From Malacoraja senta (taxonomy: Eukaryota): a stretch of DNA of 64,000 nucleotides. The stretch is taken from the NCBI GenBank assembly GCA_038087875.1, contig CM076001.1, positions 1,984,001 through 2,048,000 of the forward strand, given 5' to 3'. The number at the start of each line of letters is the position of its first letter. Within the stretch, counting starts at the first letter, position 1. This document shows positions 9,748-62,229 of this stretch, piece after piece. Under the pieces are notes generated by a model. That model had not been told where the DNA came from and did not search any database. It saw nothing but the letters and a program-made list of their open reading frames with translations. Both the position numbers and the translations under genes were made by a program.

Positions 9748-12210
9748 ATGAGCTGGATGTGGCACATGCTGGTTGAATATTATTATTATCCGATTTTGGC
9801 AGCAATCGGAGTGCCTGGTAGGTCACTCGAAAGTTGTATTGGGATTGGTGTGAGGTGATGTGCAGTAAATGGGCAATATAAAATATGTAGTGAAAAGTGT
9901 GTTGACATTTAGATTGTTGGTCTGCGTCCACGCGTGGGGCGGTGGGACGTGGTTAACCTAAAGCCTTTAATAATTTGCTCGTTGACCATTTATTTAATAT
10001 CTATTCTTTATTAATATTTTAATCAAGGTGAAAGCCGGAGCCAGCTGAGTTTAAAAAGGATACATTGGGTTGCAACTTAAACACTGTTGAATCATATTCC
10101 CGGGCGCCATGTTTCGGAAGGCATTGCAAAGTTCCCTGGAAACCTGATCTAATTATTTAGCTGCGGACTGTGGAAAATATCTCGAGACCTGATATAATGT
10201 TTAAGTTTACTTCTTCGCATTAAATTACAGGGATGTATCCAATGATTCTGGAGGATAGAATATTTGGAACTAATGTTTAGGTTTAGGATTTTGGCTCAGG
10301 TTACGGTTTATTATCGTTAGGTGTACGGAGGTACAGTGTAAAGCTTTGTTACCCCTGCACTCAAATCCGGTCATATCATACTGTAGATTCACAAAAGCAT
10401 CTCAACCTCAAATGGAATAGGGAAAGGGGGCATAGGGTGTACAGAATATATTTATCAGACAATCTCGTCTAGCACACCCGCGGCTGATCCTTGACTATGG
10501 CGAGATTCCGGCACGGTGGCGGCAGGGTGGCGCAGCGGTAGAGTTGCTGCCTTACAGCGCGAGAGACCTGGGTTCGATCATGACTACGGGTACTTGCATA
10601 TACCGAGATTTGTACGTTTCCGAGTGGGTTTTCTTCAGGTTCCCCCGTAATCTCCCACACTCCAAAGACGTACAGGTTTGTAGGTTAATTGGCTTGGTAA
10701 AATTGTAAATTGTCCCGAGTGTGTGTAATATAGTGTTAAGTGTTATAGTGTAGTATAGTGTTAATGTGTGAGCGTCGCTGGGCGGCGCGGATTGTGGGCC
10801 GAAGTGCTTGTTTCCGTGTTGTATCTTTAAACTAAACTAAAATACATATTTATCTATTATTATTCCACATTTCCTGCAATCAAATGTGTTTTATTGTTCC
10901 TTCTGGTATCAAATGGGTTTAAAAGTCTATTTTTATTTAAAATTTTACCTAATTTAACTAACTGTGATTAACTGAAAAACGCTCCAGAATGAGCGCGGCC
11001 CTCTCGATTAGTTGTAGAACTGGGAATCTAATCCTGCTTGGATGGGTAATCCCGATCACCGTTGGCTGCGATTTTATCCGCATATCGATTCCTTTCAAGG
11101 TCATTTCAAGGGTGATTAATTTACTATCCAGGGGAAAAATTGCACATGAGCACAGCATTTACAAGGAAATCTCTGCCAACGGAATCCTCTTCGCTGTTGA
11201 CGTAAAGCGACCAACAAAATAAATGCACCCACTACTCGCGCATCACCAAACTTCACCGTCCATTTAATCACATGTTCTTCTTGCCTTCTTTCCCAGTGAA
11301 CCTGGCGGCGATTGCTATTCTGTACCGGGGAAGGTGCGGTCTTTCCGAATGCATTGCTCGTTACCTGATAGCCATGGCGACGGCGGACCTCGCGGTGATT
11401 GTCTGGGATGTCATATTACATCGGATAGCCGATCTGTATTGGTGGGACACATTCTTGCTCCACAGTACTGTGTGCAGGTTCATTTCCTATCTCGCTTCTG
11501 CGGCCGTAGACTGTTCCGTTTGGTTCACGGTCGCTTTCACCTTTGATCGCTTTGTGGCCATTTCCACGCAAAATCTAAAAAACAATTACTGCACCAAGAA
11601 AACCGCGATGGTAGTTATCGTGACCCTAAGTGCGTTCTTCAGTTTACAAAATGCTCCGTGGCCTTTCACGTATGGTTATTTTCACATGGATAATGAGGGT
11701 ATAGAGTGGGGATGCCGAATAGGGACACACTTTTATACTTTGCCCACATGGGTTGCATTTTCTTGGACTGAACAGTTGTTAACACCTGTGATTCCGTTCG
11801 GTTTGATTGTGTTGTTTAATGCGCTCACGATCAGACGCATTTTAGTGGCTAGTCGGATCCGCAGGAAGCTCCGCGATCTGGATGGTGGGGACGCCGAGAT
11901 CGGAAACCGCAGACGCTCCGTTATTTTACTCCTTGCGATATCCAGCAGCTTTATGCTGCTCTGGGGCACAACAGTAGCACATTTCGTTTTCTATCGAAGT
12001 ACGAGCGGATATTGGTACAGGGGATTGATGAATCCATTTGCAATATTTGATCGGACTGGGGTTGTCCTGCAGCTGTTGAACACCTGCACAAACACGCTAA
12101 TTTACACCACAACCCAGAGGAGGTTCAGAGAGCAGCTGCTCCAGGCATTCAAATACCCCTTCACCCTAACTGTAAGTTTAATAAAATGGAGAAAACACGG
12201 TGTAAAATAA
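9748..12210 (+). CDS. GPR139/GPR142-like class A orphan GPCR, copy 1 (exon 1 9748-9817, exon 2 11297-12210; 327 aa)
   Basis: Exon 1 encodes MSWMWHMLVEYYYYPILAAIGVP and ends at the G|GTAGGT donor. A polypyrimidine-CAG acceptor at 11296 gives an in-frame phase-1 junction. Seven hydrophobic segments with AMATAD (TM2), AFTFDRFVAI (TM3), an ECL2 Cys, IPF (TM5), LLWG (TM6) and LLNTCTNTLIY (TM7). No stops. Exon structure is identical in all three copies. Confidence 0.92.
10510..10842 (+). mobile_element. tRNA-derived HE1/V-SINE-like element in the gene 1 intron
   Basis: A box GGTGGCGCAGCGGTAG, B-box-like GGTTCGATC, core CTCCCACACTCCAAAGACGTACAGGTTTGTAGGTTAATTGG, and a (TAAAC)n tail. Confidence 0.85.
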
Positions 12211-23924: not shown

Positions 23925-26700
23925 CCGGCCCCTTAGGCCTATCAAGTCTACTCCGCCATTCAATCATGGCTGATCTGTCTCTCCCTCTTAACCCCATTCT
24001 CCTGCTTTCTCCACATAACCCCTGACACTCGTACTAATCAAAAATCCATCCATCTCTGCTTTAAATATATAAATTGACGTCATCCACAGCCTTCTGTGTC
24101 AAAGAACTCCACAGATTCACCACCCTTTAACTAAATAAATTCGTCCTCCTTCTTTCCAAAAGAACGCCATTTCATTCTGAGGCCGTGGCCTATGGCCGTA
24201 GACTCTCCAACAAGTGGAATCTCCGCGTCCAATCTATGCGAGCCTTTCACTATGCGGTAAGTTTCAATGAGGTCCCCATGATGCTTCCAATCTCCAGCGA
24301 GTATAGGCTCAGTGCCGTCAAGTCAAACGCTCATCATATGTTAACCGACTTATTCCTGGGGTCGTTGTTGTAAACGTCCTCGGGACCCTCTCCGAGCTAC
24401 CACATCCTTCTTTAGATATGGTACCCACAATTGCTCACAATTCTCCAAAAGCGGCCTGACCAGCGCCTTATAGCGCCTTAGTATTATATATCTGTATTTT
24501 TGTATTCTAGCCATGTTGCCTTCCTTACTACTAATTCGATTTGCAAATTAACTATTCTGGTAATCGTGCACCAGCACTCTCAAGTCCCTTTGCACCTACG
24601 ATTTCAAGATTCCTTCCCCATTTTGGAAATTGTCTACGCCTATCTTCCTACTACCAAAATGCGTAGTTCCACACTTTGCTACTGCATATTCCATCTGCCA
24701 CTGTTCTGCGCACTCTCTCCAACCTATCCAGATCCTCATACAAAGTCCCATCATTCATACACTACCTGTGTATGGATCATGTTGCCGGAGGAGGCAGTTA
24801 ATCGCAAAGTTTAAGAAATATTGCGACACGTACATGGATAAGATATGTTTAGAGGAATATGAGCCAATCGTAGGAAAGTGCGTGTGTGCAGACGGGGTAG
24901 GTTCCTCAGCGTGGGCAGGTTGGGCCGGAGGACTTGTTTCACGCTGTATGACACCAGATCTCTATGCCAAAATGGAAAACAACACATCACCTTCCGCCGG
25001 GGCAAGGTGCAAATTTCTGGACTTAGCATCCGAGTCTCCAACTCTACTAAATCTCAGGTACACAAAAATGCTGGAGAAACTCAGCGGGTGCAGCAGCATC
25101 TATGGAGCGAAGGAAATAGGTAACGTTTCGGGCCGAAACTCTTCTTCAGACTGATAGGGGGTGGGGAGAAGAAAGGAAAAAAGGAAAAAGGCGGAGGAGG
25201 AGCCCGAGGGCTGGGGGGGGGGAGGAGACAGCCAGATGGCTGATGAAGGGGAGGGGACAGCAAGGGCTAGCAGAATTGGGAGAATTCAATGTTCAGGCCA
25301 CCAGGTGGTAGAGTGCCCAAGCGGAATATGAGGTGCATTTCCTCCAATTTACGGTGTTGCTCGCTGTGGCCATGGAGGAGACCCAGGACAGAGAGGTCAG
25401 ATACGGAATGGGAGGGGGAGTTGAAGTGCTGAGCCACCGGGAGTTCAGGTTGGTTATTGCGGACCGACCGGAGGTGTTCCGCGAAACGATCGCCAAGCCT
25501 CCGCTTGGTCTCACCGATGTAGATCAGCTGGCATCTAGAGCAGCGAATGCAATAGATGAGGTTGGAGGAGATGCAGGTGAACCTCTGTCGCACCTGGAAC
25601 GACTGCTTGGGTCCTTGAATGGAGTGGAGGGGGGAGGTGAAGGGACAAGTGTTGCATCTCTTGCGGTTGCAAGGGAAAGTACCAGGGGAGGGGGTGGTAT
25701 GGGCGGGAAAGGAAGAATTCACAAGGGAGTTACGGAGGGAGCGGTCTTTGCGGAAGGCAGACATAGGGGGAGATGGGAAGATGTGGCGAGTGGTGGGGTC
25801 ACGTTGGAGGTGGCGAAACTGACGGAGGATCACTTGTTGTATGTGACGGCTGGTGGGGTGAAAGGTGAGGACTAGGGGGACTCTGCCTTTGTTGTGAGTG
25901 GGGGGATGGGGAGAGAGAGCAGTGTTGCGGGGTATGGCAGAGACCCTGGTGCGAGCCTCATCTATGGTGGAGGAGGGGAACCCCCGTTCCCTGAAGAATG
26001 AGGACATTTCAGATGCCCTGGTGTGGAACGCCTCATCCTGGGAGCAGATGCGGCGTAGACGGAGGAATTGGGAGTAGGGGATGGAGTCCTTACAGGAAGC
26101 AGGGTGGGAAGAAGTGTAGTCCAGATAGCCATGAGAGTCGGTAGGTTTGTAGTGGATGTCGGTAAGGATAAATCTCTCTTCCTCGTCATTTGGAAGAAAA
26201 TTCGGCATTTCGACGACTGTCTTGGTTATATTGTCTCTCGTGAAAACGTTCAAAAATTGAAATGTCAAATCACAACATCGTTCGGTCCAGAGAAATAAAA
26301 TATCCTGATCTACACAGTCTCTCTCGGAATTGGATATCTCCAGTCCTGGCAAAAATGTTGTCATTAATACTCTGCAACTCCCCAGATTAATGGTATCATT
26401 GGTAACATATTGCGACCTGAACAACATTGCACGTGCGGTCTCGCCAACGTCTCAGACCAGATGGTTGAACTCCACTTATACCCAACTGCGTGCGACTCCT
26501 GATGTGAGATAAGCCCACACCTTAAGATGGCTGAGGGAAACAATATCCTACCAGCCCCATACAAATTGACTCGCATTGCTTGCAATCCGATTGCTCATGA
26601 ACAAGATGTAGAAAATGCACTGTTTTTGTGCTGTATAACATGCAACTACCACTTACAGTGAGATTTGGTAGAATATTCCTGCCCCTCCCGTGAGGGAGAG
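23925..26700 (-). mobile_element. Ancient CR1 remnants, shared with the gene 3 upstream region (about 54965-56600) and interrupted by Penelope
   Basis: Antisense CR1 3' UTR near 23930-24130. Degenerate TLARPHVQCC and RVLMTTFLPGLE resemble CR1 RT C-terminal motifs. Confidence 0.7.
25056..26168 (-). mobile_element. 5'-truncated Penelope-like retroelement (RT end + GIY-YIG endonuclease + terminal repeat) with an 8-bp TSD (TAAATCTC)
   Basis: ORF part DIHYKPTDSHGYLDY...SQFLRLRRIC...NLIYCIRC...YIGETKRRLGDRFAEH. TSD at 25048-25055 and 26169-26176. The paralogous site near 56130 is empty. Confidence 0.92.
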
Positions 26701-27356
26701 TTGGCGCTGCGTCCCCTTTAAATATTTACCGTCTCATTTTAGACTCCTACCCTCTTTTAGAGACCTATATCCGAGGAACAAAATAAAATACCTCCACTGA
26801 TCATCACCTTGACTTATTTTAATCCTCCATAACTCCTCGGGGTCTTGCTCGCTGCAGAGAGAAACCTCTGCATTATCCAGTCCATCTCACAATTCACACC
26901 GTCCAATATTAGTACCATTCTTGTGAATAGAGTTGCTTACTCCATAGTTTAAATGGATCTTTAATGAATTATTAAGAAAAATAATATCCCTGTTCCTGTG
27001 CTGTACTGCTCTGTGAAGTTTTTTTTCTGTGAATTGCTTGGTTTGAGTGCAGCAAACATATCACTTCTTTCTTAGGTCAAGACTTTCTTCAGAATGATCT
27101 ATACCCCAAACATATACCGCCGGTCAGAGTCTCCTTAACCCATTCAATTAGTTCTATCATCTTGCACATCAACATTCTTGATATTTCCAACGGATCAATG
27201 CATTGAGATGAATTCGCCCTAATATCCGGAATAACATCAAACGCTGTTCACCTCTCTGTTATTTGAATTAACACATTTATTTAAAGATATCCTGTTGGTC
27301 AAGAATATTTTTTGCCGATATTTATTACTGGTCAGTTGTCACGTTACACATAATAT

Positions 27357-28394
27357 AGGTATGTTACAAAACTTACCTTCAGTCGCGCTGTAATTCTGTC
27401 ACTGGCCATGTGCGCGATTTTGGCGCCTTTAAGGGGGGCGGGGTTAAAACGCGGTTTCTCCTCCCTTGTCCTGAATTATATTTCGTTGGAGTACAAGCGT
27501 GTGCTGAAAAATCATTCCTAGGGGCGTTTTCTGAATTTTTTATTTTTATTAAATCGTCAATGTCAGCGCTGGAGTAAATTTAAAAGCAGCTCCTGAAGCG
27601 TCAACGCCGATTACGGGGACGGATTTCACTCACGGGACAGGCAAACGAAAGTGGTTTCTTTAAATGTATAAAAGTGCTTCTTAAGAAGCCTTTAATTCAC
27701 ATTTTGTTCATGCAAAACGGTGATTTTATTCCCCGAACTAACGGCAGTATTTTTCATGCCAATACGGGGTTAAATTCACCGCAAATGAACGTTCCAAAAG
27801 ATCGCGTTCCAGAAATCCTCACTCACAAGATGATTTAAATGCCCTTTAATTTACAGGGATTAAACATTCAATTCCTTCCATTTGGCCTGTAAATTCATGA
27901 AAATGAGATTTAAAAATTATGTTATATTGTGAATTATTGTGTGAATGTTATTTGGACACTTAGGCTATTTAAAAATGTTAATCTATTCTTAACAAATTGA
28001 TAGATGTTTAGATCTAATAATTGAATTTTGTAATTAGCTACAATTAGGTAACTAACTAATTATATGCTTTACTTTCATGTCTTCTAAGTAAGATTGTTTC
28101 ATATTTGTTCCAGAATGCTTCAATCTATAATAACTGAAAATTTCTTTCAGTTATCTTAATTTTTAAGAAACTTATGGGCTTTTAACTGTCCTCGATCACA
28201 GCTTTTGTGTTAAGTCAATGGAAAAGCAATAGCGAACAAGATGCTAATTTCCGAGTATAGAAATGGCCATAACTTCTTTAATACAGAAGAGATGAAAGTG
28301 AATTAGGTGTCAAATTAAACTTCTTTTTATGCTTTATCTGATGCGATAAATTGCAGACTTTATTTTTTAAATCTCAAAATTTTGTAACATTGTT
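27357..28394. mobile_element. Non-autonomous DNA transposon (1038 bp) with a 9-bp TSD (ACATAATAT) and subterminal inverted repeats
   Basis: TSD at 27348-27356 and 28395-28403. ATGTTACAAAA / TTTTGTAACAT lie 4 nt inside each end. The paralogous site near 57280 is empty. Confidence 0.8.
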
Positions 28395-28912
28395 ACATAA
28401 TATTTGCTTATCCTTTACATCATGAAGTGCCAACAGTCGAAATATAGTAATGCTGCTGTTGTAGTTGAATTGTATAAGATGTCGTCTAGAAGGTTCCTGT
28501 GATTTACATCATTTGGAACGCTGCACTAGAATGATTCCGTTTTCTTTTGAAAAGGAGCTGCACGAGGAATCTAGGATCAAACTATTAATGGGTGCATGTT
28601 AATGAATGGAACCGTGTCTGAAAATTGCATAACAAATGCTACAAATAAAATACTGTATTATATCGCAGCATATGTGGATAAATGCTATATGACATGTATT
28701 TTGCTACATCTTCGTGTCACGCGTTTAAATTTAAAAATAGAATCTTACAATTCTCTTGAGCGGTTGGTACTCAGCAGGTGCCTGAGTAGCGAAAGATCGC
28801 ATAATCAGTTTGATCGCTTTACATCACCTGGGAGCAACCTATTTGTTCAACGTTACACAACGGATGTCCGCGGGGACGTGAATGCACGCTGTCCTTCACT
28901 TTTTTCCAGGAA

Positions 28913-28920
28913 TATAAATA
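28913..28920 (+). promoter_or_regulatory. TATA box of GPCR gene 2
   Basis: TATAAATA about 80 nt upstream of the ATG, conserved in gene 3. Confidence 0.7.
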
Positions 28921-28993
28921 TAGCGCGGTTTGACTTCTCAATATGACTTCTGTAAGTTTTGAACTGCGTAACTGGGGACGGCTTGAAGGAGAA

Positions 28994-31318
28994 ATGAGTT
29001 GGAAGTGGCACTTGGAAGTTGAATATTATTATTATCCAATTCTAGCAGCAATAGGAGTACCCGGTAGGTCAAGGGAACGCTGTATGTGGGACTGAGATGT
29101 GGGATGCTGTGTTGATAAAGTCAATGTTAAAGGTAAAGTGAAAATAGTGTGCGAAAAACGGGAATGCTAGACTTCATCCTTCGGGTTACGGCGGTATTAA
29201 CCAGAACATGCTAATCTCCTTGATCGTTGGTCGTTCATTGGATGTGGTACATGTTGATTCTCTTCAGATTCAGGTTTAAGTGCATTGTTGTCATGTCTCC
29301 CTGAGAGCTGCAACAAAAAGCTTTGGTTTGCAAGCAATCCAATCAGATCAAATAATATTATATATCAATACAAACAATTCAATCTCAGCAACAGGTAGTG
29401 TAAAAGCAGATATCGGAGTGTAGAGCATAGTTTAAGTTTGGTAGCGCATAAACTCCAATGTCCGTAAGGGGATAGAGGTGAATCGGCAACACCCTGGTAT
29501 ATGGAAAAGCGGCTCAGAAGCCTGACAACAGAGGGGAGGAGGCCGTTCTGGAGTCTGGTGGTGCGAGCTTTCAACCTTCTGTATCTTCTGCCCGACGGGA
29601 GTTGGAAATAGGAGGAATGAGCGGGGTGAGACATGTCTTTGCACATGTCGCCTCCGTATCCCAGGCATTGTGAAGTGCAAATGCAGTCAACACTTGAAGT
29701 CCTCAACCACTTCCACTTCAGCACCATTGATGATGACTGGTGATCCACCGCTTTTCGTGAAATCGATAACTAGCTCCTTCGTCCTGTTGACACTAACGTT
29801 GAGATTGTTATTATCTGGAAACTTGTGGGAGCAGTTACAGCCGAATTTGGTCGCGGGGTCGTGAGTGTTGAGGGTGCAGTCGGGGACGGAGCAGTCATCT
29901 TTATGTGGCACCGTTGTAGAGAATTATTGTGGAAGGGGTGTTATCACTAATTCTTACTGATTAAGGTATGTTCATTAGAAAGTCGAGTATCCACTCGCAA
30001 GCTGGTGTACTGATCGCTAGGCTCGAGAGTTTATCAATGGGTTTGGATGGGAGTAGTGTTGAAGGCAAGTACTTCAGCGGAGAAATGGGAATCTAACGTT
30101 CGACTGCTTGCTGCCTGGCTGTTCCCGGGAAGTGTTTCGGTCCAGGACGATTGCGTCTGACGCGGGCATGTTGCTGCAATATGGAATCTGCGGTGCATCA
30201 AGGGTGGCTCGGAGAGAGCTCACACTGCCTGCGTTTATTGCTGCTAGCTAATCCGCACAGCTCCTTAGCACGCACCCAGGTTTGCATGTGGGGCCGTTGT
30301 TTTCGAACAAATAAACAAAGCGTACCTAAAATTGACCCCGCCTCCAAATTAGCATCGCGTTTCCCTTCCATGTAACGACAGTTTCCTCTTTTCTACTCCC
30401 CCAGTGAACTTGCTGGCGATTGTGATCCTGTCCCGCAGAAATTGTGGTCTCTCAAAATGCACCACTTGTTACCTGGTGGCCATGGCGACGGCGGACCTCT
30501 CAGTGATCGTCTGCGAAGTGATATTACATCGGATTGCCGACCTTTACTGGGTCGACACATTCCTCTTCCACAATACTGTGTGCAGGTCCATTATGTTCCT
30601 CGCTCCCGCGGCCGTAGCCTGTTCGGTTTGGCTCACGGTCGCTTTCACATTTGATCGCTTTGTGGCCATTTCCACTCAGAATCTGAGAAGCAGATACTGC
30701 ACCGAGAGAACCGCGCTGGTGGTTATAGTGACCCTATCTGCGTTCTTCTGTTTACAGAACGCGCCCTGGCCTTTTGCGTACACTCATTATCTCAGGGATA
30801 AGCAGGGTATACCGTGGGGTTGCCGAATACGATATCACTTTTATAGCCTATCCTCGTGGATAGCATATTCCTGGACTCAACAGCTGCTAATCCCAGTCAT
30901 TCCGTTTTGTTTGATTATGCTGATGAACGTACTCACAGTCAGACGCATTTTAGTGGCCAGTCGTGTCCGCAGAAATCTCCGTGATCTCAGTAGTGAGGAC
31001 CCCGAGATCGCAAACCGCAGACTGTCCGTAATTTTACTCCTTGCAATTTCCAGCAGCTTTATGCTGCTCTGGGGCACAACTGTAGCATATTTCGTTTTCT
31101 ATCGAATTACGAACGCATTTATGTACAGGGGGTTGATGAACCCATTTGTAACCTTTGAACAAACTGGAATTATGCTACAACTGTTGAACACCTGCACAAA
31201 CACGCTCATTTACACCGTGACCCAGAGGAGGTTCAGAGAGCAGCTGCCACAGGTACTCAAATACCCCTTCACCCTAACTGTAAGTTTAATAAAATCGAGA
31301 AAACCTGGTGTAAAATAA
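28994..31318 (+). CDS. GPR139/GPR142-like class A orphan GPCR, copy 2 (exon 1 28994-29063, exon 2 30405-31318; 327 aa)
   Basis: Exon 1 encodes MSWKWHLEVEYYYYPILAAIGVP and ends at the G|GTAGGT donor. CAG acceptor at 30404. Intact 7TM frame with a DRF motif and LLNTCTNTLIY. Confidence 0.93.
29270..29950 (-). mobile_element. Old Rex1/Babar-type fragments in the gene 2 intron (shared with the gene 3 intron, about 58170-59080)
   Basis: HPAHSSYFQLPSGRRYRRLKARTTRL and TKELVIDF...VIINGAEVEVVEDFK peptides. Confidence 0.75.
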
Positions 31319-32522
31319 CATTACAATACTAATCCTTTCGTGAGTGAGTGCAAAAACTAGATAATGAAGGAGTTTTCTATGAAAGCTTTCCGCATCAATT
31401 TTAAAAAAAAAAGCTGAGAAATACAATCTGAACGCGTCCCCTGCACTGGAATGCACATTTGGCCATATATTTAACATGCGACACGGGCGCGTTGTTCAAA
31501 GTGCCCAGTGGGGAGGGCGGCCATGTGGAACCGAGTGCTATGTTGTACTGGAGCAGACCTCCAATGATTCCGGAATTGAGCCTCGCTGTTAACTGTTTCC
31601 ACCTTCATTTAAATGCAGCGGCAACGTCTCCAGCACCTAATGAAAATAGACATAGAGTTATGGTCCTAAACATTGCAACCTCCATAACTCTACTCTTCTT
31701 TGAGACGTTCCATGGTTACGTATGTAAGTGCCCAGTGCACAAATGTGTTTAATAAAATTATTTCTGCAACATTTACGTTAATGAGAGTTCGATTTTATTT
31801 TTGCTTCTCGCACTGAATGGAATGCCTCATTGCACCTTACAGAGGCTTTCGGTTTTCATCACAATTATTAACTCTGGACTAGATGCAGCCAAAGGTTGTG
31901 GGCGCTATTCATACAAGTTGGCATTACTAATTATATTTTAATGGAAGCAGAGTGTGACAAGCGAGTGTCCAGTAGAGGGCGGTAAAGTGAGTAAGTTCAC
32001 CCGTGTGGTCAAGGGATTCTGAATCGATTTGCATTAATGTCCCACATCCATTGATGCAGCGCCGACGCTGGAGCTCTGCCGAGGCGAAGTAACTAAATTC
32101 GGCGTACAAGTACATATCTGTTTTGTGCAGTTGCATCGTATGCATCATTTACCGCTCTCATTGTAAGCATCACGGAGAGCAAGGAGCTCAAAGGATTGCT
32201 TCTCCGGCTCGAGAGCATTTCTTGTCGGGTAGGCGACGTATCGGCTGTTTAGTTACCTGCAGCGAAAAATGGAGAATTATGAACTAACCTTTTATCGAAA
32301 TATAAACTGATAACAAAATTATTGAGGGGTCAAAATTAGCTTTCCTCCAGTTGTTTGTGCCAGTATTGATATCCATTGGGACCAGTGTCCATTTGTGACT
32401 TGGCGCCATCTTCCACAGCAATCTTTTCTGAACTTGATTTGCCAACAAACCCTCCATCCGTTGAATCCAGCCGCCACGCCTCCAACTGAATGGCAATAGC
32501 TCTACTATTCCGTTCCTCGACT

Positions 32523-46462: not shown

Positions 46463-47036
46463 GTCAAATTTGTCTCCTCTTACGTTTTGCTCGAATCTGT
46501 GTACGTGCTTGATAACGTACCCCTGCTTCGTCAACGTAAAGGACGTATTTTACACTTCTACCGCATGGAGAGTTTACGAATGGCAACGGCGTTTTTAAAA
46601 CCCTTGCCTCCCGTTCCTCGTCATTCTGTTGCTCAAACTGCAGACGGTCAGACAAACCCTGGCGGTCAGTTAAGCCCGCGGGAGACTGCGGGCTGAGAAC
46701 AATGGAGCAAACAGTGAACTAGCAATGAAGAACAGAGGAATGTCCATCATCTTACTGAAGGCAATCTAGTGAAGCTGTATACTGTTGCGTTCGCCTTACC
46801 TGGTAAATGTTATATTTGTAAAAGTAACAAGCATTAGCTGTGCTAGCCGGTCTAATGCCACTGATCCAATGTTTATCCTCCAAGAAAGTGGATGCATTTT
46901 GGTGCTTCTGAACTCCTGCACCAACTCGTGCATTTATGAAGGGACGCAGACCAAATTCCGAGAGTAGTTGAAGAATACGGCGAAATACCCCCTGGGTCTA
47001 TTTAGACGAATGTTTACATATTGTGAACGTCTCTAA
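46463..47036 (+). pseudogene. GPR139-like GPCR pseudogene fragment (ECL2 to C-terminus), from a different subfamily than copies 1-3
   Basis: VYVLDNVP / CFVNVKDVFYTSTAWRVYEWQRRF*NPCLPFLVILLLKLQTVRQTLAVS*ARGRLR...MKNRGMSIILLKAI**SCILL...DPMFILQESGCILVLLNSCTNSCIYEGTQTKFRE*LKNTAKYP. Frameshift near 46522. In-frame stops at 46596, 46671, 46767, 46770 and 46965. Confidence 0.85.
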
Positions 47037-53945: not shown

Positions 53946-56900
53946 TCCGTTCGTGGTCAGGGAGTATGGCGGGGATTTTTCTGTCTCCAGTGGAAACACT
54001 ATTAGACCGCGCACAGTTCACTCTGTGTAGTATCAGCGTCGCCGCCACCACGTGAACAGTCAGCAGCTCACTAACACTTAAAATGATATACTTATGCAAA
54101 ATACATCAACACTATTGCTACCAACGGGTAACATTACCATAATCCCGATAGGTTCAGGCGGCCAGGTGTTACAGAATCAAATTAATATTGAGATTCACAT
54201 TCAAAATATATCTCCAAAATCAAAGAAAAATTAAGCTAACAATGGCCCACAAATCATCTTTTCAAATATGCTAACTATACATCGTGTTTTCCGCAATGTA
54301 AACAAACCACTGGATATTGGAAGATAATTCAAATGCACTCTCGCTCACTTACTTGCTTGCTGGCAGTGTGAACAGTGAGGAGGATTCAGTGAGAATGACT
54401 TCGACAGGTTGGGTGAGATGCATGTCAGAAGCAATTAAATGTGACGTTAGCCACTTAATGAATGTAAGGTTAGCCAAGTAATTCCACATCACTGCATTAT
54501 CAATGCATTCCGATGATTTCGCCTTAATATCTGGAATAACGCCACATGCGGCCCCCCTGTCTGTTTTATTGATAAAAACATCGCTCCAAATATCACTATT
54601 TGATCAAGGACATTCCTTGCTGATATTTATTTCTGGTCATTTGGCACGTTATACGTTAAATTTTCTTATGATTTTCTTCATGAAGTGCCAACAGGTGAAA
54701 GATATTAATGCCGCTGCTGTATCCAATTGTATTCACTCCCACCTAGACAGGTCCATGTGATTTACATCATTTAGACCGCTGCACAGGAACCATTCTCGTT
54801 TGTTTTGAAGAGGAGCTCCAAGCGAAATCCAGGAAAATATTATTACTGGGTACATGTCAAATGAATTCAACAGTGTCTGGGAAGAGCAGTAGAAAGGTTG
54901 CAAATACCATATTACATCGCAGCATGTGTTGATAAGTGATCACAAGGTCATAAGTGATCGGTGCAGAATTAGGCCACTAGGCCCATCAAGTCTACCGCCA
55001 TTTAATCATGGATGATCCATCTCTCCCTCCCCCCCCCCCGCCAAACCCCATTCTCCTGCCTTCTCCCCATAAGCCCTGACACTCGTACTAATCAAGAATC
55101 CACATATCTCTGCCTGAAATATATAAATTGACGGCTTCCACAGCCTGGTGTGGCAAAGAACTCCACAGATTCCCCACCCTTTAATTAAATAAATTCGTCC
55201 TCCTTCTTCCCAAACGAACGCCATTCCATTTTGAGGCTATGACCTATGGTCGTAAATTCTCCCTCTAGTGGAATCATCCTCTCCACGCCCACTCTATGCA
55301 AACCTTTCACCATTCGGTAAGTTTCAATTTGGTCCCCCATGAAGCTTTCAAACTCCCGCGAATGTCGTCAAACGTTCATCATATTTTAACCGACTCATTT
55401 GCTGGGATCGTTGTTGTAAACGTCCTCTGGACCCTATCCGGAGCTGGCAGATCCTTCCTCAGATATGGTACCCACAATTGCTCACAATGCTCCAAAAGCG
55501 ACCTGACCAGTGCCTGATAGTGCCTCAGTATTGCGTACCTGTTTTTGTATTCTTGCCCTATTGAAATAGATGCTAGCATTGCGTTTGCCTTCCTTACTAC
55601 CAATTCGATTTTCAAATTACCTGGTTTGGGAATCCAGCACTATTACTCGCAAGTCCCTTTGCACCTTCGATTTCTGGATTCTCACCCCATTTTGATAATG
55701 GTCTACGCCTTTATTCCTACTATCAAAATGCTTGACTCAACACTTTGCTACTCAATATTCCATCTGCCACTTCTCTGCACACTCTCCCAACCTATCCAAG
55801 TCCTTATGTAAAATCCCAGCTTTCTCTACACTACCTGTGTATGGAGCATGCTGCCGGAGGATATAGTTGACGCAGGTACTGTCGCAACGTTTTACCAATA
55901 TTGCGACAGGTACATGGATAAGATATTTTAAGAGGAATATGGGCAAATCGTAGGCAGGTGGGGTGTGCAGATGGGGTACGTTGGCCATCGTGGGCAGATT
56001 GGGCCGTAGGACTATCTTTCACGCTGTATGACACCAGAGCTCTATTCCAAGTTCGAAGAACAACAACTCACCTTCCGCTCGTGCAAGCCACAAGTTTCTG
56101 GAGTTAACATCCGAGTCTTCAACGTTACTAAAGATCTCTTCCTCTTCATTTGGAAGACAATTCGGCATATCGACGCCTGTCTTGATTATATTGACTCTAG
56201 TGATAACGTTCACAACTTGAAATGTCAACTCACAACTTCGTTCACTCCAGAGGAATAAAATATCCTGACCTAAGTCTCTCTCGGAATTGGACATCTCCAG
56301 TCCTGGCAACATTTTTGTCATTAATACTCTGCCGCTCCCCAGATTAATGGTTGCTAACACATTGCGATCTGAACAACATTGCACGTGCTGTCTCGCCAAC
56401 GTCCCAGACCAGATGGTTAAACTCTACTTATACCCATCTGAGTGCGACACCTGCAGCGAAATAAGCCCACACCTCAAGCTATCTGAGGTAAACAATATCC
56501 TACCATCCCCATTCAAATTGATTCGCATTGGTAGTGAACAAGATGGAGATAAGGCCCTGTTTCCGTGCTGTATAACATGCAACTACCACTTACAGTGAGA
56601 CTTGTGTGAATATACCAGCCCCTCCCGTGAGGAAGAGTTGGCGCTGCGTCCCCTTTAAATATTTACCGACTCATGTTAGACTCCTGCCCTCTTTTAGAGA
56701 CCTATATCCGAGGAACAAAATAAAATACCTCAATTGATCACCTTGTCTTATTTTAACTCTCCATAACTCGTCGGGGTCTTGTTCGCTGCAGAGTGAAACC
56801 TCTGCATTATCCAGTCCATCTCACAATTCACACCGTCCAATATTATTACCATTCTTGTGAGGAGAGCTGTATACTCCCTAGTTTATATGGATCCGTAATG

Positions 56901-57812
56901 AATTATTTCGAAAAATAATATCTCTGTTCCTGTGCTGTACTGCTCTGTGAAGATTTTTTTCTGTGAATTGCTTCGTTTGAGTGCAGCAGACATGACACAT
57001 CTTTCTTTGGTCAAGACTTTCTTCAGAATGATCTATCCCCAAACATTTACAGCCAGTCAGGGTCTCCTTAACCCATTCAATTAGTTCTATCATCTTGCAA
57101 ATCAACATTCGTGATATCTTCAACGGATTAATGCATTGAGAAGATTTCGACCTAATATCTGGAATAACATCAAAAACTGTTAATCTCTGTGTTTTATGAA
57201 TTAACACATTTCCTGAAAGATAACCTGTTGATCAAGCATATTTCTAGCCGATGTTTATTTCCAGTCAGTTGTCACGTTACACATTATATTTGCCTATTCT
57301 TTACTTCATGATGTGCCAACAGTTAAAAGATATTAATGCTGCTGTTGTAGCTGAATTGTATACGATGTCGTCTAGAAGGTTCCCTGTGATTTACATAATT
57401 TACACCCTGCCCAAAAATGATTATCTTTCCTTTTGAAAGGGAGCTCCACGGAAATTCCAAGATCAAATTATTAATGGGTACATGTTAAATGAATGGAGCG
57501 GTGTCTGGAAAATGCAATACCAATGCTACAAATAAAATACTGTATTACATCGCAGCATGTGTGGATAAATGCTATATGACATGTATTTAACTGCATCTGT
57601 GTGCCACGCATTAAAATTTAAAAATAGAATGTGCAGTCGTATCTTACATTTCCCTTGTGCGGTTGGTACTCAGCTGGTGGCTGAGTAGCGAGCGATCGCA
57701 TAATGAGTTTGATCGCTTTGCATCACCTGGGAGCAACCTATTTGTTCAACGGTCCACAACGGATGTCCGCGGGGAGGTGAATGCACGCTGTCCTTCACTT
57801 TTTTTCCAGGAA

Positions 57813-57820
57813 TATAAATA
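57813..57820 (+). promoter_or_regulatory. TATA box of GPCR gene 3
   Basis: TATAAATA about 80 nt upstream of the ATG. Confidence 0.7.
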
Positions 57821-57891
57821 TAGCGGTTTGACTTCTCACTTTGACTTCTGTACGTTTTGCACTGCATAACTGGAGACGGCTTGACGGAGAA

Positions 57892-60446
57892 ATGAGTTGG
57901 AAGTGGCACTTGGACGTTGAATATTATTATTATCCAATTCTAGCAGCAATCGGAGTACCCGGTAGGTCAAGGGAACGCTGTATGTGGGACTGAGATGTGG
58001 GATGCTGTGTTGATAAAGTCAATGTTAAAGGTAAAGTGAAAATAGTGTGCGAAAAACGGGAATGCTAGACTGCATCCTTCAGGTTACGGCGGTATTAACC
58101 ACATAATATTAATCTACTTGATCGTTGGTCGTTCATTGGATCTGGTACAGGTTGATTCTCTTCAGATTCAGGTTTAAGTGCATTGTTGTCATGTCTCCTT
58201 GAGAGCTGCAAAAAAAGCTTTGGTTTGCAATCAATCCAATAAGATCAAATAATATTATATATCAATACAAACAATTCAATCTCAGCAACAGGTAGTGTAA
58301 AAGGAGAAATCGGAGTGCAGAGCATAGTTCAGGTTTGGGAGCGCATAAAGCCGAATGTCCACAATGGGATAGAGATGAAAATACCCTGGCTTATGGAAAA
58401 GCGGCTCACAAGCCTGATAACAGAGAGGAGGAAGCATTTCTGGAGTCTGGTGGTTCGAAATTTCAGTCTTCTGTATCTTTTGACAGCCGGGAGCAGGAAG
58501 TAGAAGAAATGAGCGGGGTGAGACATGTCTTTGCACACGTCGCCTCCGTTTCCCAGGCATTGTGAAGTGCAAATGCAGTCAACGGTGCGGTGTCTACTTC
58601 GTGATATGGATCCGACTTATTCCAGAACTCTCTGCAATTTATTGTTTATAGGGCAGAGATGTACCCACAACAAGCTGAATTGCACCTAACAGTATGCTTT
58701 GAATGCTAATCTGTAGCAGAATGTTTGAGTCATTAGAGGCAGGTCAGAGCTCCTCAGTCTTCTCAGTAAAGGTGTTGGTCTGTATATCGGAGAGAGATAT
58801 TAATGAAATATTAACTGCGAGGAAATTAAAGTCCTCAACCACTTCCACTTCAGCACCATTGATGATGACCGGTGCTTCACCGCTTTTCCTGAAATCGATA
58901 ACTAGCTCCGTCTTGTTCACACTGACGTTGAGATTGTTATTATCTGGAAACTTGTCGGAGCAGTTACAGCCGAATCTGGCCGCGGGGTCGTGAGTGTAGA
59001 GGATGTAGTCGGGGACGGAGCAGACATATTTATGTGGCACCGTTGTAGAGAATTATTGTGGAAGGGGTGTTATCACTAATTCTCACTGATTAAGGTATGT
59101 TCATTAGAACGTCAAGTATGCACTCGCAAGCTGGTGTACTGATCGCTTGGCTCGGGAGTTTATCAATGGGTTTGGATGGGAGTAGTGTTGAAGGCAATAC
59201 TTCAGCGGAGAAATGGGAATCCAACGTTCGACTGCTTGCTGCCTGGCTGTTCCCGGGAAGGGTTTAGGTCCAGGACGATGGCGTCTGATGCGGACATGTT
59301 GCTGCAATATGCAGTCTGAGGTGTATCAATGGTGGCTTGGAGACAGCTCAAGCTGCCTGCGTATACCGCTGCTAACTAATCCGCACAGCTCCTCAGCACG
59401 CACCCAGGTTTGCAAGTACGCCAGTTGTTTTGGAACAAATAAGCAAAGCGTACCTAAAATTGACCCCGCCTCCAAATTAGAATCGCGTTTCCCTTACATG
59501 TAACGACAGTTTTCTCTTTTCTACACCCGCAGTGAACTTGCTGGCGATTGTGATTCTGTCCCGCAGAAATTGTGGTCTCTCCAAATGCACCACTCGTTAC
59601 CTGGTGGCCATGGCGACGGCGGACTTCTCAGTGATTGTCTGCGAAGTGATATTACATCGGATTAGCGACCTTTACTGGGGCCACACATTCCTCCTGCACA
59701 ATACTGTGTGCAGGTCCATTATGTTCCTCGCTCCCGCGGCCGTTGCCTGTTCGGTTTGGCTCACGGTTGCTTTCACATTTGATCGCTTTGTGACCATTTC
59801 CACTCAGAATCTGAGAACCAGATACTGCACCGAAAGAACCGCGCTGGTGGTTATAGTCACCCTAACTGCGTTCTTCTGTTTACAGAACGTGCCCTGGCCT
59901 TTTGCGTACACTTATTATCACATGGATCGGCAGGGTATACTGTGGGGTTGCCAATTACCATTTAACTTTTATAGCCTATCCTCGTGGATAGCATTTTCCT
60001 GGACTCAACAGCTGCTAATCCCAGTCATTCCATTTTGTTTGATTATGGCGATGAACGTGCTCACAGTCAGACGCATTTTAGTGGCCAGTCGTGTCCGCAG
60101 AAGACTCCGCGATCTCAGTACTGAGGACCCCGAGATCGCAAACCGCAGACGGTCCGTAATTTTACTCCTTGCAATTTCCAGCAGTTTTATGCTGCTCTGG
60201 GGCACAAATGTGGGATATTTCGTTTTCTATCGATGTACGAACGCATTTTGGTTCAGAGGGTTGAAGAACCCATTTGCAACATTTGAACAAACTGGAATTA
60301 TGCTACAACTGTTGAACACCTGCACAAACACACTTATTTACACCGTGACCCAGATGAGGTTCAGAGAGCAGCTGCTCCAGGTACTCAAGTACCCCTTTAC
60401 CCTAACTGTAAGTTTAATAACATCGAGAAAACCTCGTGTAAAATAA
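57892..60446 (+). CDS. GPR139/GPR142-like class A orphan GPCR, copy 3 (exon 1 57892-57961, exon 2 59533-60446; 327 aa)
   Basis: Exon 1 encodes MSWKWHLDVEYYYYPILAAIGVP and ends at the G|GTAGGT donor. CAG acceptor at 59532. Intact 7TM frame, about 88% identical to copy 2 in exon 2 (36 of 304 differences counted). Confidence 0.93.
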
Positions 60447-62229
60447 CATTACAATACTAATCCCTTCGTGAGTGATTGTGAAAACTAGGTAATGGAGGAG
60501 TTTTCTCTGAAAACTTTCCGCATCAATTAAAAAAAAAATAGCTGAGAAATACAATTTGAGCGCGTCCCCTGGACTGGAATGCATATTTCGCCATCTATTT
60601 AACATGCGACACGTTGTTCAAAGTGCCCAGTGGGGAGGGCGGCCACGTGGAACCGTGTGCTGTGTTGTTCTGGAGCAGACCTCCAATGTTTCCGTAATTT
60701 AGCCTCGCTGTTAACCGTTTCCACCTTCCTTTGAATCCAGCGGCAACGTATCCAGCACCCAATGAAAATAGACAAAGAGTTATGGTCCTGAACATTGCAT
60801 GCTCTATTACTCTACTCTTCTATGAGACGTTCCATGGTTACGTATATAAGTGCCCAGTGCACAAATGTGTTTAATAAAATGATTGCTGTAACATTTATGT
60901 TAATGAGAGTTCGATTTTATTTTTGCTTCTCGCACTGAATGTAACGCCTCATTGCTTCTTACAGAGGCTTTCGGTTTTCATCACAATTATTAACTCTGCA
61001 CCAGATGCAGCCAAAGGTAGTGGGTGCTATTCATACGTTGGCATTACTAATTATATTTTTAATGAAAGCAGAATGTAACAAACGAGCGTCCAGTAGAGGG
61101 CGGTAAAGTGAGTAAGCTCGCCTGTGTGGTAAAGCGATTCTGAACCGATTTGCTTTAATGTCCCACCTCCATTGATGCAGCTGGAGCTCTGCCTATTTGA
61201 GAATAGAGGGAGTGCTCAGAGTCGGATTTAACTCCTCCTGCAGGGCAAGGAAATGTGAGAAATCCATTAATTTATTTTCGCCACCAATGGCGGCTGAGAT
61301 TTGATTAGCTCCAAATTTGAGTTGAGTAATCTCTCCACAAATCCTCCACTCCCGACGCGGTAACGTTTACATTTTTACCTATTCTGATTGACATTTTTCC
61401 CCTCGAGGCCGAGAACACCTTCACTGAACTTTTATGCTTTATTTCTTGACTTATTACTGTTTAAAACTAAGTAAGAAGTTTAAAACATCAAAATACTTTG
61501 AATTTAAAACGACCAGCTGCAACTGATGACCTCACAATGGCTCGGGTAGCAGTGATCATCTCCCCTGAAGATTTCATCCAATATTTCACGTTATTCGCGA
61601 TTAAAGCATTGAAAATGCAAATGTTCACAATATTTTTACATGTTCTGATCCACATTTATCCCCTCCAGGCAGCGAGCACATGCGCTGAACATTTTATGCT
61701 TTATTTCTCGACATTACTGATTAATGTTAAAAAAAATCTAAAGACTCAAATTAAAACGACTAGCTTCAACTAATGACGTCAAAATGGCTCGGCTAGCAGT
61801 GATCAGCATCACTTACGTTCGGGAACGGCTTGAGTTGGAGGACCACGCCTCCTGTGGGGGCTACGGCCAGGGAACGGGTGCGTTAGGGGAGCAGACCCTA
61901 TCGAAGACATTCAAAACTTTACATACCTCAACCAGATCTTCCTGCAATCTCCGACATTCCAGAGGGAAAGAATCCAAATATGACCAATCTCTCCCTGCAC
62001 CGCTAATCCAGCCACCATTCCGGTAAATGAGCAACTGCGGCTCTAAAACACGCTGTTCTTATTAAATGTGTCCATCTTGCTGAATTGGCAAAGACATTCT
62101 CTAATGGCGTTGCTACTGGTCACCAATTTGTACAGCCTGGTAGTTTAGTTAGTTTACATTCGTTTATGATAGGCGTCGATAGGGTAGACTTTCAAAACTT
62201 TCATTTTCCCAAAGGTCGGTTCTAACCGG

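Follow-up and report, generated by a model that had tools for sequence, protein, structure and literature searches.

The window, by which we mean the whole 64-kb stretch of DNA that was analysed, contains three intact two-exon class A GPCR paralogs, all on the + strand, which we refer to as copies 1, 2 and 3. Their exons, and the duplication unit that carries copy 2, are located as follows.

9748..9817, + strand: copy 1 exon 1, encoding Met plus 22 residues plus the first base of the junction codon, with the donor G/gtaggt; found by tblastn with residues 1-23 of Amblyraja P0004, the donor being read directly.
11297..12210, + strand: copy 1 exon 2, from the C-terminal half of TM1 to the stop codon, intact; identified by ORF, Pfam 7tm_1 (E=4e-16) and the acceptor ag/TG.
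28994..29063, + strand: copy 2 exon 1; identified by tblastn with P0004 residues 1-23 and by splice sequence.
30405..31318, + strand: copy 2 exon 2, intact, 304 codons if read from 30404; identified by ORF, Pfam and splice sequence.
57892..57961, + strand: copy 3 exon 1; identified by tblastn with P0004 residues 1-23 and by splice sequence.
59533..60446, + strand: copy 3 exon 2, intact; identified by ORF, Pfam and splice sequence.
23990..32060, + strand: duplication unit with copy 2, which aligns to 55044-61181 (the copy 3 unit) at 80-92% identity in a self-blastn comparison.

Exon 1 of each copy is 70 bases long, opens with Met-Ser-Trp and closes with G/gtaggt. It is followed by an intron of 1.3-1.6 kb and by an exon 2 that extends from an ag acceptor to the stop codon, and the predicted product of each copy is 327 residues. 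In all copies a single base separates the ag acceptor from the start of exon 2; the open reading frame of copy 1 begins earlier, at 11272, only through read-through of the polypyrimidine tract. In each of the three copies the reading frame is open, and the start codon and both splice sites are preserved. A fourth family sequence, at 46476-47012, is a frame-broken fragment of a more distant member.

The assignment of these genes to the class A GPCRs was borne out, with Pfam 7tm_1 scores of 59.7-61.9 bits across all three copies against a cut-off of 30.5. The class A anchors N2, D31, D84-R85-F86, W223, N266...Y270, C60 and C140 are found in all copies, and D2.50, DRF, W6.48, N7.49-xx-Y and both disulfide cysteines are kept in all three; P6.50 and P7.50 are both Thr. 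A protein search returned 922 relatives, and among the 120 listed all of the named matches come from sharks, rays or chimaera, nearly all of them under the label 'probable GPR139'. Likewise, when a profile of the family was compared with solved structures, GPR139 ranked first (E=5.6e-20, with the runner-up at 4e-12). A search of the solved structures with a single sequence did not find GPR139 at E<1e-5 and produced only weak matches to the CCK-B receptor. Human GPR139, like GPR142, is a class A orphan that responds to aromatic amino acids. A short N-terminus and the rhodopsin-family fold are common to GPR139 and the skate genes; unlike GPR139, which is one gene, the cartilaginous-fish family comprises hundreds of lineage-specific copies.

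The agonist pocket of GPR139 is formed by F3.33, H5.43, W6.48, R6.51 and N7.38, and GPR139 is without Cys at positions 3.25 and 45.50 (PMC5430874). The cartilaginous-fish family retains only W6.48 of these five pocket residues; it has P/S/A at 3.33, Q/E at 5.42/5.43, T/N at 6.51 and G/I/V at 7.38/7.39, and Cys3.25 and Cys45.50 are near-invariant across 102 family members. With four of the five pocket residues different and the Cys3.25-Cys45.50 pair present, we rejected the identification of these genes as GPR139 orthologues or as GPR139-type aromatic amino-acid receptors. Judged by the profile match, the differing pocket residues and the extra cysteine pair, the genes are distant kin of GPR139 and not orthologues. 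In Foldseek comparisons the best matches were peptide-type class A receptors, with TM values of 0.68-0.73. As in the galanin, CCK, orexin, ghrelin and neurotensin receptors, ECL2 is a beta-hairpin tied by a disulfide to TM3; the skate proteins share only 15-23% identity with these receptors, however, which makes the resemblance one of generic fold that is uninformative on ligand. Our literature searches found no paper on a GPR139-like family expansion in cartilaginous fish.

We compared the translations of exon 2 from copy 2 (30404-31315, + strand) and copy 3 (59532-60443, + strand), which are 304 residues each. The initial annotation had counted 36 differing residues among the 304, and this count is exact and arises from 62 nucleotide differences. 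Ten of the 36 lie inside a single stretch of 18 residues, as had been claimed. This stretch, residues 128-145, reads HYLRDKQGIPWGCRIRYH in copy 2 (30785-30838) and YYHMDRQGILWGCQLPFN in copy 3 (59913-59966). A scan statistic gives P=4.7e-4 for at least ten differences in any 18-residue segment (200,000 permutations), and the hypergeometric probability for residues 128-145 themselves, a segment picked post hoc from the data, is P=3.5e-6. The loop features to which these differences were mapped are given below.

30548..30571, + strand: copy 2 ECL1, residues 49-56, from AlphaFold2 secondary structure; by site posteriors, residue 50 is the hot spot that recurs most strongly.
30779..30850, + strand: copy 2 entire ECL2 (residues 126-149), forming a beta-hairpin with conserved W138-G139-C140.
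30785..30838, + strand: copy 2 18-residue stretch, residues 128-145, inside ECL2.
31109..31147, + strand: copy 2 ECL3, residues 236-248, the second hypervariable segment.
59913..59966, + strand: copy 3 18-residue ECL2 stretch, in which 7 of the 10 changes are derived, including those of five consecutive codons, 141-145, right after Cys45.50.

An AlphaFold2 model built from 102 family sequences (pLDDT 85.7, pTM 0.81) places residues 128-145 in ECL2 (126-149), in agreement with the original assignment of the variable stretch to this loop, and the stretch surrounds the modelled disulfide between Cys140 (45.50) and its partner Cys60 (3.25). The seven differences that had been reported around ECL3 are found at the top of TM6, in ECL3 and at the top of TM7 (residues 226, 228, 235, 240, 241, 245 and 249), and the four reported around ECL1 are found at the top of TM2 and in ECL1 (residues 45, 50, 51 and 55). 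The TM cores are near-invariant, with 4 of 94 inner-TM residues differing. Variation is thus found on the extracellular, ligand-facing side and the core is constrained, pocket-facing status being assigned here by generic residue numbering and not by measured distances. Because most GPCRs vary chiefly in their loops, the clustering is by itself no proof.

As a neutral yardstick for this pair we used the Jukes-Cantor divergence of copy 2 and copy 3 segments, which is 0.084 in the intron, 0.091 in the 3' flank, 0.124 upstream of exon 1 and 0.071 in exon 2. For exon 2 the Nei-Gojobori method gives a dS of 0.101, a dN of 0.062 and an omega of 0.61. Since the exon dS equals the non-coding divergence of the intron and flanks, there is no hint of recent homogenisation of copies 2 and 3. 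Within ECL2 we observed 10.5 nonsynonymous and 0.5 synonymous differences between the two copies, a dN that is 2.5 times the intron divergence. For all loops taken together, dN is 0.181, compared with a dS of 0.102 (gene-wide dS, 0.10) and the intron value of 0.084, and omega is 0.42 outside the loops and 0.18 in the inner TM halves. The nonsynonymous rate of the loops exceeds the rate of the intron, with a Fisher P of 0.004 when the loops are pooled and of 0.017 in ECL2; the same test on the 18-residue stretch gives P=0.002, the stretch again having been picked post hoc from the data. When ECL2 is compared with gene-wide dS for this pair, the result is marginal (Fisher P=0.066).

We then assembled a skate codon set of seven sequences, comprising the three copies of the window, L001 from a Logan assembly, L002 from Leucoraja erinacea, and L003 and L004 from Amblyraja radiata. 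The flanks of related loci showed a single family gene at each, and few codon sequences were gathered for this reason. A V-set gene adjoins the Amblyraja locus L004. Likelihoods were calculated with a custom codon-likelihood program, which returned an M0 lnL of -3396.2725, compared with -3396.2728 from IQ-TREE under GY+F3X4 on the same tree. The branching of copies 2 and 3 with respect to L001 and L002 is ambiguous, and the regional results were equal under the two topologies tried. With a synonymous rate shared among regions, omega for the seven skate sequences is 1.39 in ECL2, 1.47 in ECL1 and ECL3 combined, 0.51 in the outer TM halves, 0.26 in the inner TM halves and 0.59 in the intracellular parts. 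Partition omegas of 1.4-5 obtained for the loops under a shared synonymous rate were not accepted as they stand, since synonymous change is itself faster there. When each loop region is given its own synonymous multiplier, omega is 1.14 in ECL2 (multiplier 1.2) and 0.61 in ECL1 and ECL3 (multiplier 2.4, with a multiplier of 1 rejected at P=0.006), and neither omega is distinct from 1. The omega of ECL2 stays high only among the four closest copies, at 3.5 (P=0.056). The raised synonymous divergence of ECL1 and ECL3 points to exchange or older ancestry, beyond selection alone.

Site models were fitted to the same seven skate sequences in their plain form, which takes one synonymous rate for all sites. 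M2a was preferred over M1a (lnL -3356.86 vs -3363.59, P=0.0012), with 12% of sites at an omega of 2.5. The comparison of M7 with M8 that had been proposed as a check favored M8 (lnL -3366.93 vs -3356.98, P=5e-5), although in a model with no gamma variation in site rates, and M8a against M8 gave a 2dlnL of 13.2. All three comparisons thus prefer a class of sites with an omega of about 2-2.5, and the top skate sites under M2a are residues 50, 127, 137, 235, 240, 241 and 298. When gamma-distributed rates were added, M1a+G reached a lnL of -3356.02 and M2a+G one of -3354.58, a 2dlnL of 2.9 (P=0.24). With seven skate sequences, and six from the sevengill shark described below, the signal of omega above 1 is not robust either to gamma rate variation or to a loop-specific synonymous rate. 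The diversifying selection inferred in the initial annotation is therefore upheld in part. The excess of loop dN over the intron and the significant M2a and M8 fits speak for it, and the P of 0.24 with gamma rates and a loop omega of about 1 with its own synonymous rate speak against it. Overall, evolution of the loops is neutral or faster, and ECL2 of the copy 2 and copy 3 pair looks selected, but a loop dN/dS above 1 is not robust. A methodological lesson is that standard site models overstated positive selection here, because synonymous divergence is uneven along the gene.

The changes in ECL2 were polarized with the other sequences as outgroups. Seven of the ten changes are derived in copy 3, two are derived in copy 2 and one is ambiguous, and copy 3 codons 141-145 are five in a row with one nonsynonymous base each. 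Copy 1 does carry HMD together with CRI, as had been observed, but the patchwork conversion proposed from this combination is not supported for ECL2 in the window. CRI is common to copies 1 and 2, L001, L003 and L004 and is the ancestral state; H130 is probably ancestral as well, and M131 is a single parallel G-to-T change, so that HMD needs only that one change. In addition, permutation tests on the five close skate copies were null, with no tract detected (GENECONV-like best pair P=0.17, PHI-like P=0.46). A tract shared by copies 1 and 2 at nucleotides 855-892 was 'significant' in the GENECONV-like test when the two Amblyraja outgroups were included; it vanishes without them, and we dismissed it because the C-terminal tail of these outgroups is divergent. 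Neither the window nor 120 family proteins yielded a donor for the ECL2 tract of copy 3, and one candidate, P0015, was rejected because its match falls in the N-terminus and not in ECL2. As a weak hint of a different kind, five incongruent sites at nucleotides 681-801 (TM6, ECL3 and TM7) link copy 2 to L002, and copy 3 to L001. The ECL2 divergence in the window looks like a burst of substitution on copy 3 and not like a mosaic.

The pattern seen in the window recurs across the family, in 30 close pairs and in a clade of the sevengill shark Heptranchias perlo, as a receptor repertoire would be expected to show. Across 30 independent pairs of proteins that are 80-97% identical, the number of differences per site is 0.21 in the loops, 0.12 in the outer TM halves and 0.05 in the inner TM halves, and the five residues that follow Cys45.50 occur in dozens of forms across the family. 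Six Heptranchias paralogs, L005-L010, served as an independent replicate. They are near-identical save for residue 50, ECL2 residues 127-133, 141 and 148, and ECL3 residues 236-245. Comparison of M1a with M2a for these paralogs gave a 2dlnL of 40 without rate variation and of 5.8 with it (P=0.055), and sites 50 and 127 have posteriors above 0.95 in both cases. The twelve top Heptranchias sites include four of the seven from the skates (50, 127, 240 and 241), and residue 50 takes six amino acids in the seven skate sequences and three in the six from the shark, all by first-position changes. Synonymous divergence in the Heptranchias loops is also 5-9 times that found elsewhere in the gene (P<0.001), about 5-fold for ECL1 and ECL3. 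Moreover, the ECL2 block joins L008 with L009 and the ECL3 block joins L009 with L010, and these blocks display four-gamete violations, linked synonymous changes and a 6-base indel. The Heptranchias pattern is one of mosaic exchange, or else of framework homogenisation that spares the loops.

Taken together, these observations make it somewhat probable that the ligand-contact loops have been retuned in a birth-and-death receptor repertoire, a GPR139-like expansion of cartilaginous fish. Copies 2 and 3 split at a dS of about 0.10, the level of the intron and flanks. Since the split, purifying selection has preserved the core of the inner TM halves (omega about 0.2), the Trp-Gly-Cys scaffold of ECL2 and the G-protein face, and change in ECL1, ECL2, ECL3 and the tips of the helices has been neutral or faster. 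These loops presumably cover the ligand pocket and frame its opening, and it is from this placement that retuned ligand recognition would be the most likely outcome. The driver may be positive selection at a few sites combined with weak constraint at the others. Gene conversion would not be required for the ECL2 difference in the window; in other parts of the family, segments of the loops are also swapped or kept as mosaic blocks.

A rather unlikely explanation is that weak constraint is all that is needed, with loop positions being effectively neutral, an apparent omega above 1 arising from site-rate heterogeneity and small numbers, and any change in specificity not having been selected. It is consistent with M1a+G fitting as well as M2a and with the lack of significance once M2a+G is compared with it (P=0.24), with loop omegas of 0.6-1.3 that are never significantly above 1 when the loops have their own synonymous rate, and with the marginal test of ECL2 against gene-wide dS (P=0.066). 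Neutrality does not, however, readily account for 10.5 nonsynonymous against 0.5 synonymous differences in ECL2 of copies 2 and 3, where dN is 2.5 times the intron value (P=0.017), nor for five consecutive codons that each gained one nonsynonymous change in a single lineage. The sharing of four of seven top skate sites with Heptranchias, and the six amino acids in seven skate sequences and three in six shark sequences at residue 50, also argue against it.

Segmental exchange, by which copy 3 codons 141-145, and perhaps 130-131, would have been copied from a paralogue outside the window, with conversion shuffling and maintaining loop diversity, seems quite improbable for this pair. The different groupings of the Heptranchias ECL2 and ECL3 blocks and the 5-9-fold synonymous divergence of the loops there are what such exchange would produce, as are the clustering of incongruent skate sites at 681-801, the 2.4-fold synonymous rate of ECL1 and ECL3, and the identity of copy 3 codons 130-131 to copy 1. 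Nevertheless, the GENECONV-like and PHI-like tests on the skate copies were null, the copy 3 tract is without a donor in the window or among the 120 family proteins, and the putative copy 1 tract spans at most about 12 bases. Synonymous divergence in ECL2 of copies 2 and 3 is likewise not raised (Sd 0.5, multiplier 0.65-1.2). It is very improbable that one or more of the copies is a decaying pseudogene whose loss of function shows first in the loops. The gene-wide omega of 0.6 is high, and the window also contains the dead fragment of the family at 46476-47012; yet frames, start codons, splice sites, class A motifs and disulfide cysteines are intact in all three copies, inner-TM omega is 0.18 for the copy 2 and copy 3 pair, and the exon is less divergent than its flanks.

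The favored reading of retuned ligand-contact loops places this family beside several known systems. Positive selection in extracellular parts is known from the MRGPR, T2R, V1R/ORA, TAAR, OR and FPR repertoires. Like these, the skate genes belong to tandem birth-and-death clusters with pseudogenes and combine a gene-wide omega of 0.4-0.7 with a conserved TM core and variation in the extracellular loops and helix tips; unlike these, they are not members of any of the six by sequence and have an intron within TM1. In the clustered protocadherins, MHC and KIR, conversion homogenises the framework and the segments that determine specificity stay diverse. As an analogy of process only, the near-identical framework of the Heptranchias paralogs resembles this, as do the linked differences of ECL2 and ECL3, which assort independently, whereas copies 2 and 3 of the window show no framework homogenisation. 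A bolder proposal, which we consider unlikely, is that the family is an undescribed hypervariable repertoire in which ECL1, ECL2 and ECL3 act as exchangeable cassettes, shuffled by conversion and diversified by selection on a constant framework, and which might serve immune or chemical sensing in animals with very small classical olfactory receptor families.

The analysis provides a map of likely specificity residues, namely 50 in ECL1, 127-133 and 141-145 in ECL2, 236-245 in ECL3, and position 6.51, and copies 2 and 3 constitute a natural pair for loop-swap and ligand-screening work. OR, TAAR and ORA genes are scarce in sharks and rays (PMC11979771), yet these fishes carry hundreds of copies of GPR139-like orphan receptors.

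We observed that the sites grouping copy 2 with the Leucoraja erinacea locus (L002), and copy 3 with the Logan assembly locus (L001), are confined to a single stretch of exon 2:

Exon 2 nucleotides 681-801 (copy 2, 31084-31204; copy 3, 60212-60332), + strand: cluster of incongruent sites

All five sites supporting this grouping lie inside the stretch, and two of them are synonymous. The main split is supported by 14 sites, versus 5 for the copy 2-L002/copy 3-L001 grouping. The affected segment covers TM6, ECL3 and TM7, and the cluster could reflect either a tract shared since long ago or a conversion of small size.

Loop sequences were also compared among six near-identical paralogues (L005-L010) that are distributed across approximately 7 Mb of Heptranchias perlo chromosome CM068671.1. 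The ECL2 and ECL3 haplotypes of these paralogues are block-like and assort independently, the differences among them include a 6-base indel, and the loops have diverged 5-9 times as much at synonymous positions as has the remainder of the gene. One paralogue differs at its end:

L006, 12340-12379: altered C-terminal tail

Its final residues are divergent and its open reading frame is longer by four codons; a frame or sequence shift is seen shortly before the family's usual stop.

Two further relatives bear on their gene models:

L002, 9923-10837: intact exon 2 of Leucoraja erinacea
L001, 132-251: intron read-through giving the start of the Logan protein P0001

The L002 exon 2 comprises 304 uninterrupted codons with the usual family stop. 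The public protein for this locus, P0002, starts at an internal Met, has an unrelated tail spliced on, and is probably a mis-annotated gene model. Residues 1-39 of P0001 are read-through of the intron 5' of exon 2 rather than genuine coding sequence; they match the copy 2 and copy 3 introns.

Other elements were found near family members:

Window 25267-26427, - strand: 386-residue ORF, Penelope-type retroelement-like as judged by eye
Window 46476-47012, + strand: frame-broken GPCR-family fragment, TM5 to TM7
L004, 1-1502: V-set immunoglobulin-domain gene (Amblyraja radiata)

The Penelope-like ORF, to which a GIY-YIG endonuclease tail was assigned by eye, falls within the copy 2 duplication unit. 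The GPCR fragment is 36-39% identical to the intact window copies, derives from a more distant member of their family, and is immediately preceded by retroelement-ORF-like sequence. The V-set gene sits approximately 8.5 kb upstream of a GPCR family member.

Finally, two proline anchors are replaced in all copies: P6.50 of the CWxP motif by Thr225 (copy 2, 31076-31078), and P7.50 of the NPxxY motif by Thr267 (copy 2, 31202-31204). Both threonines are at least 90% conserved among 102 aligned family sequences. Threonine at both 6.50 and 7.50 is an unusual departure from the class A receptor norm.
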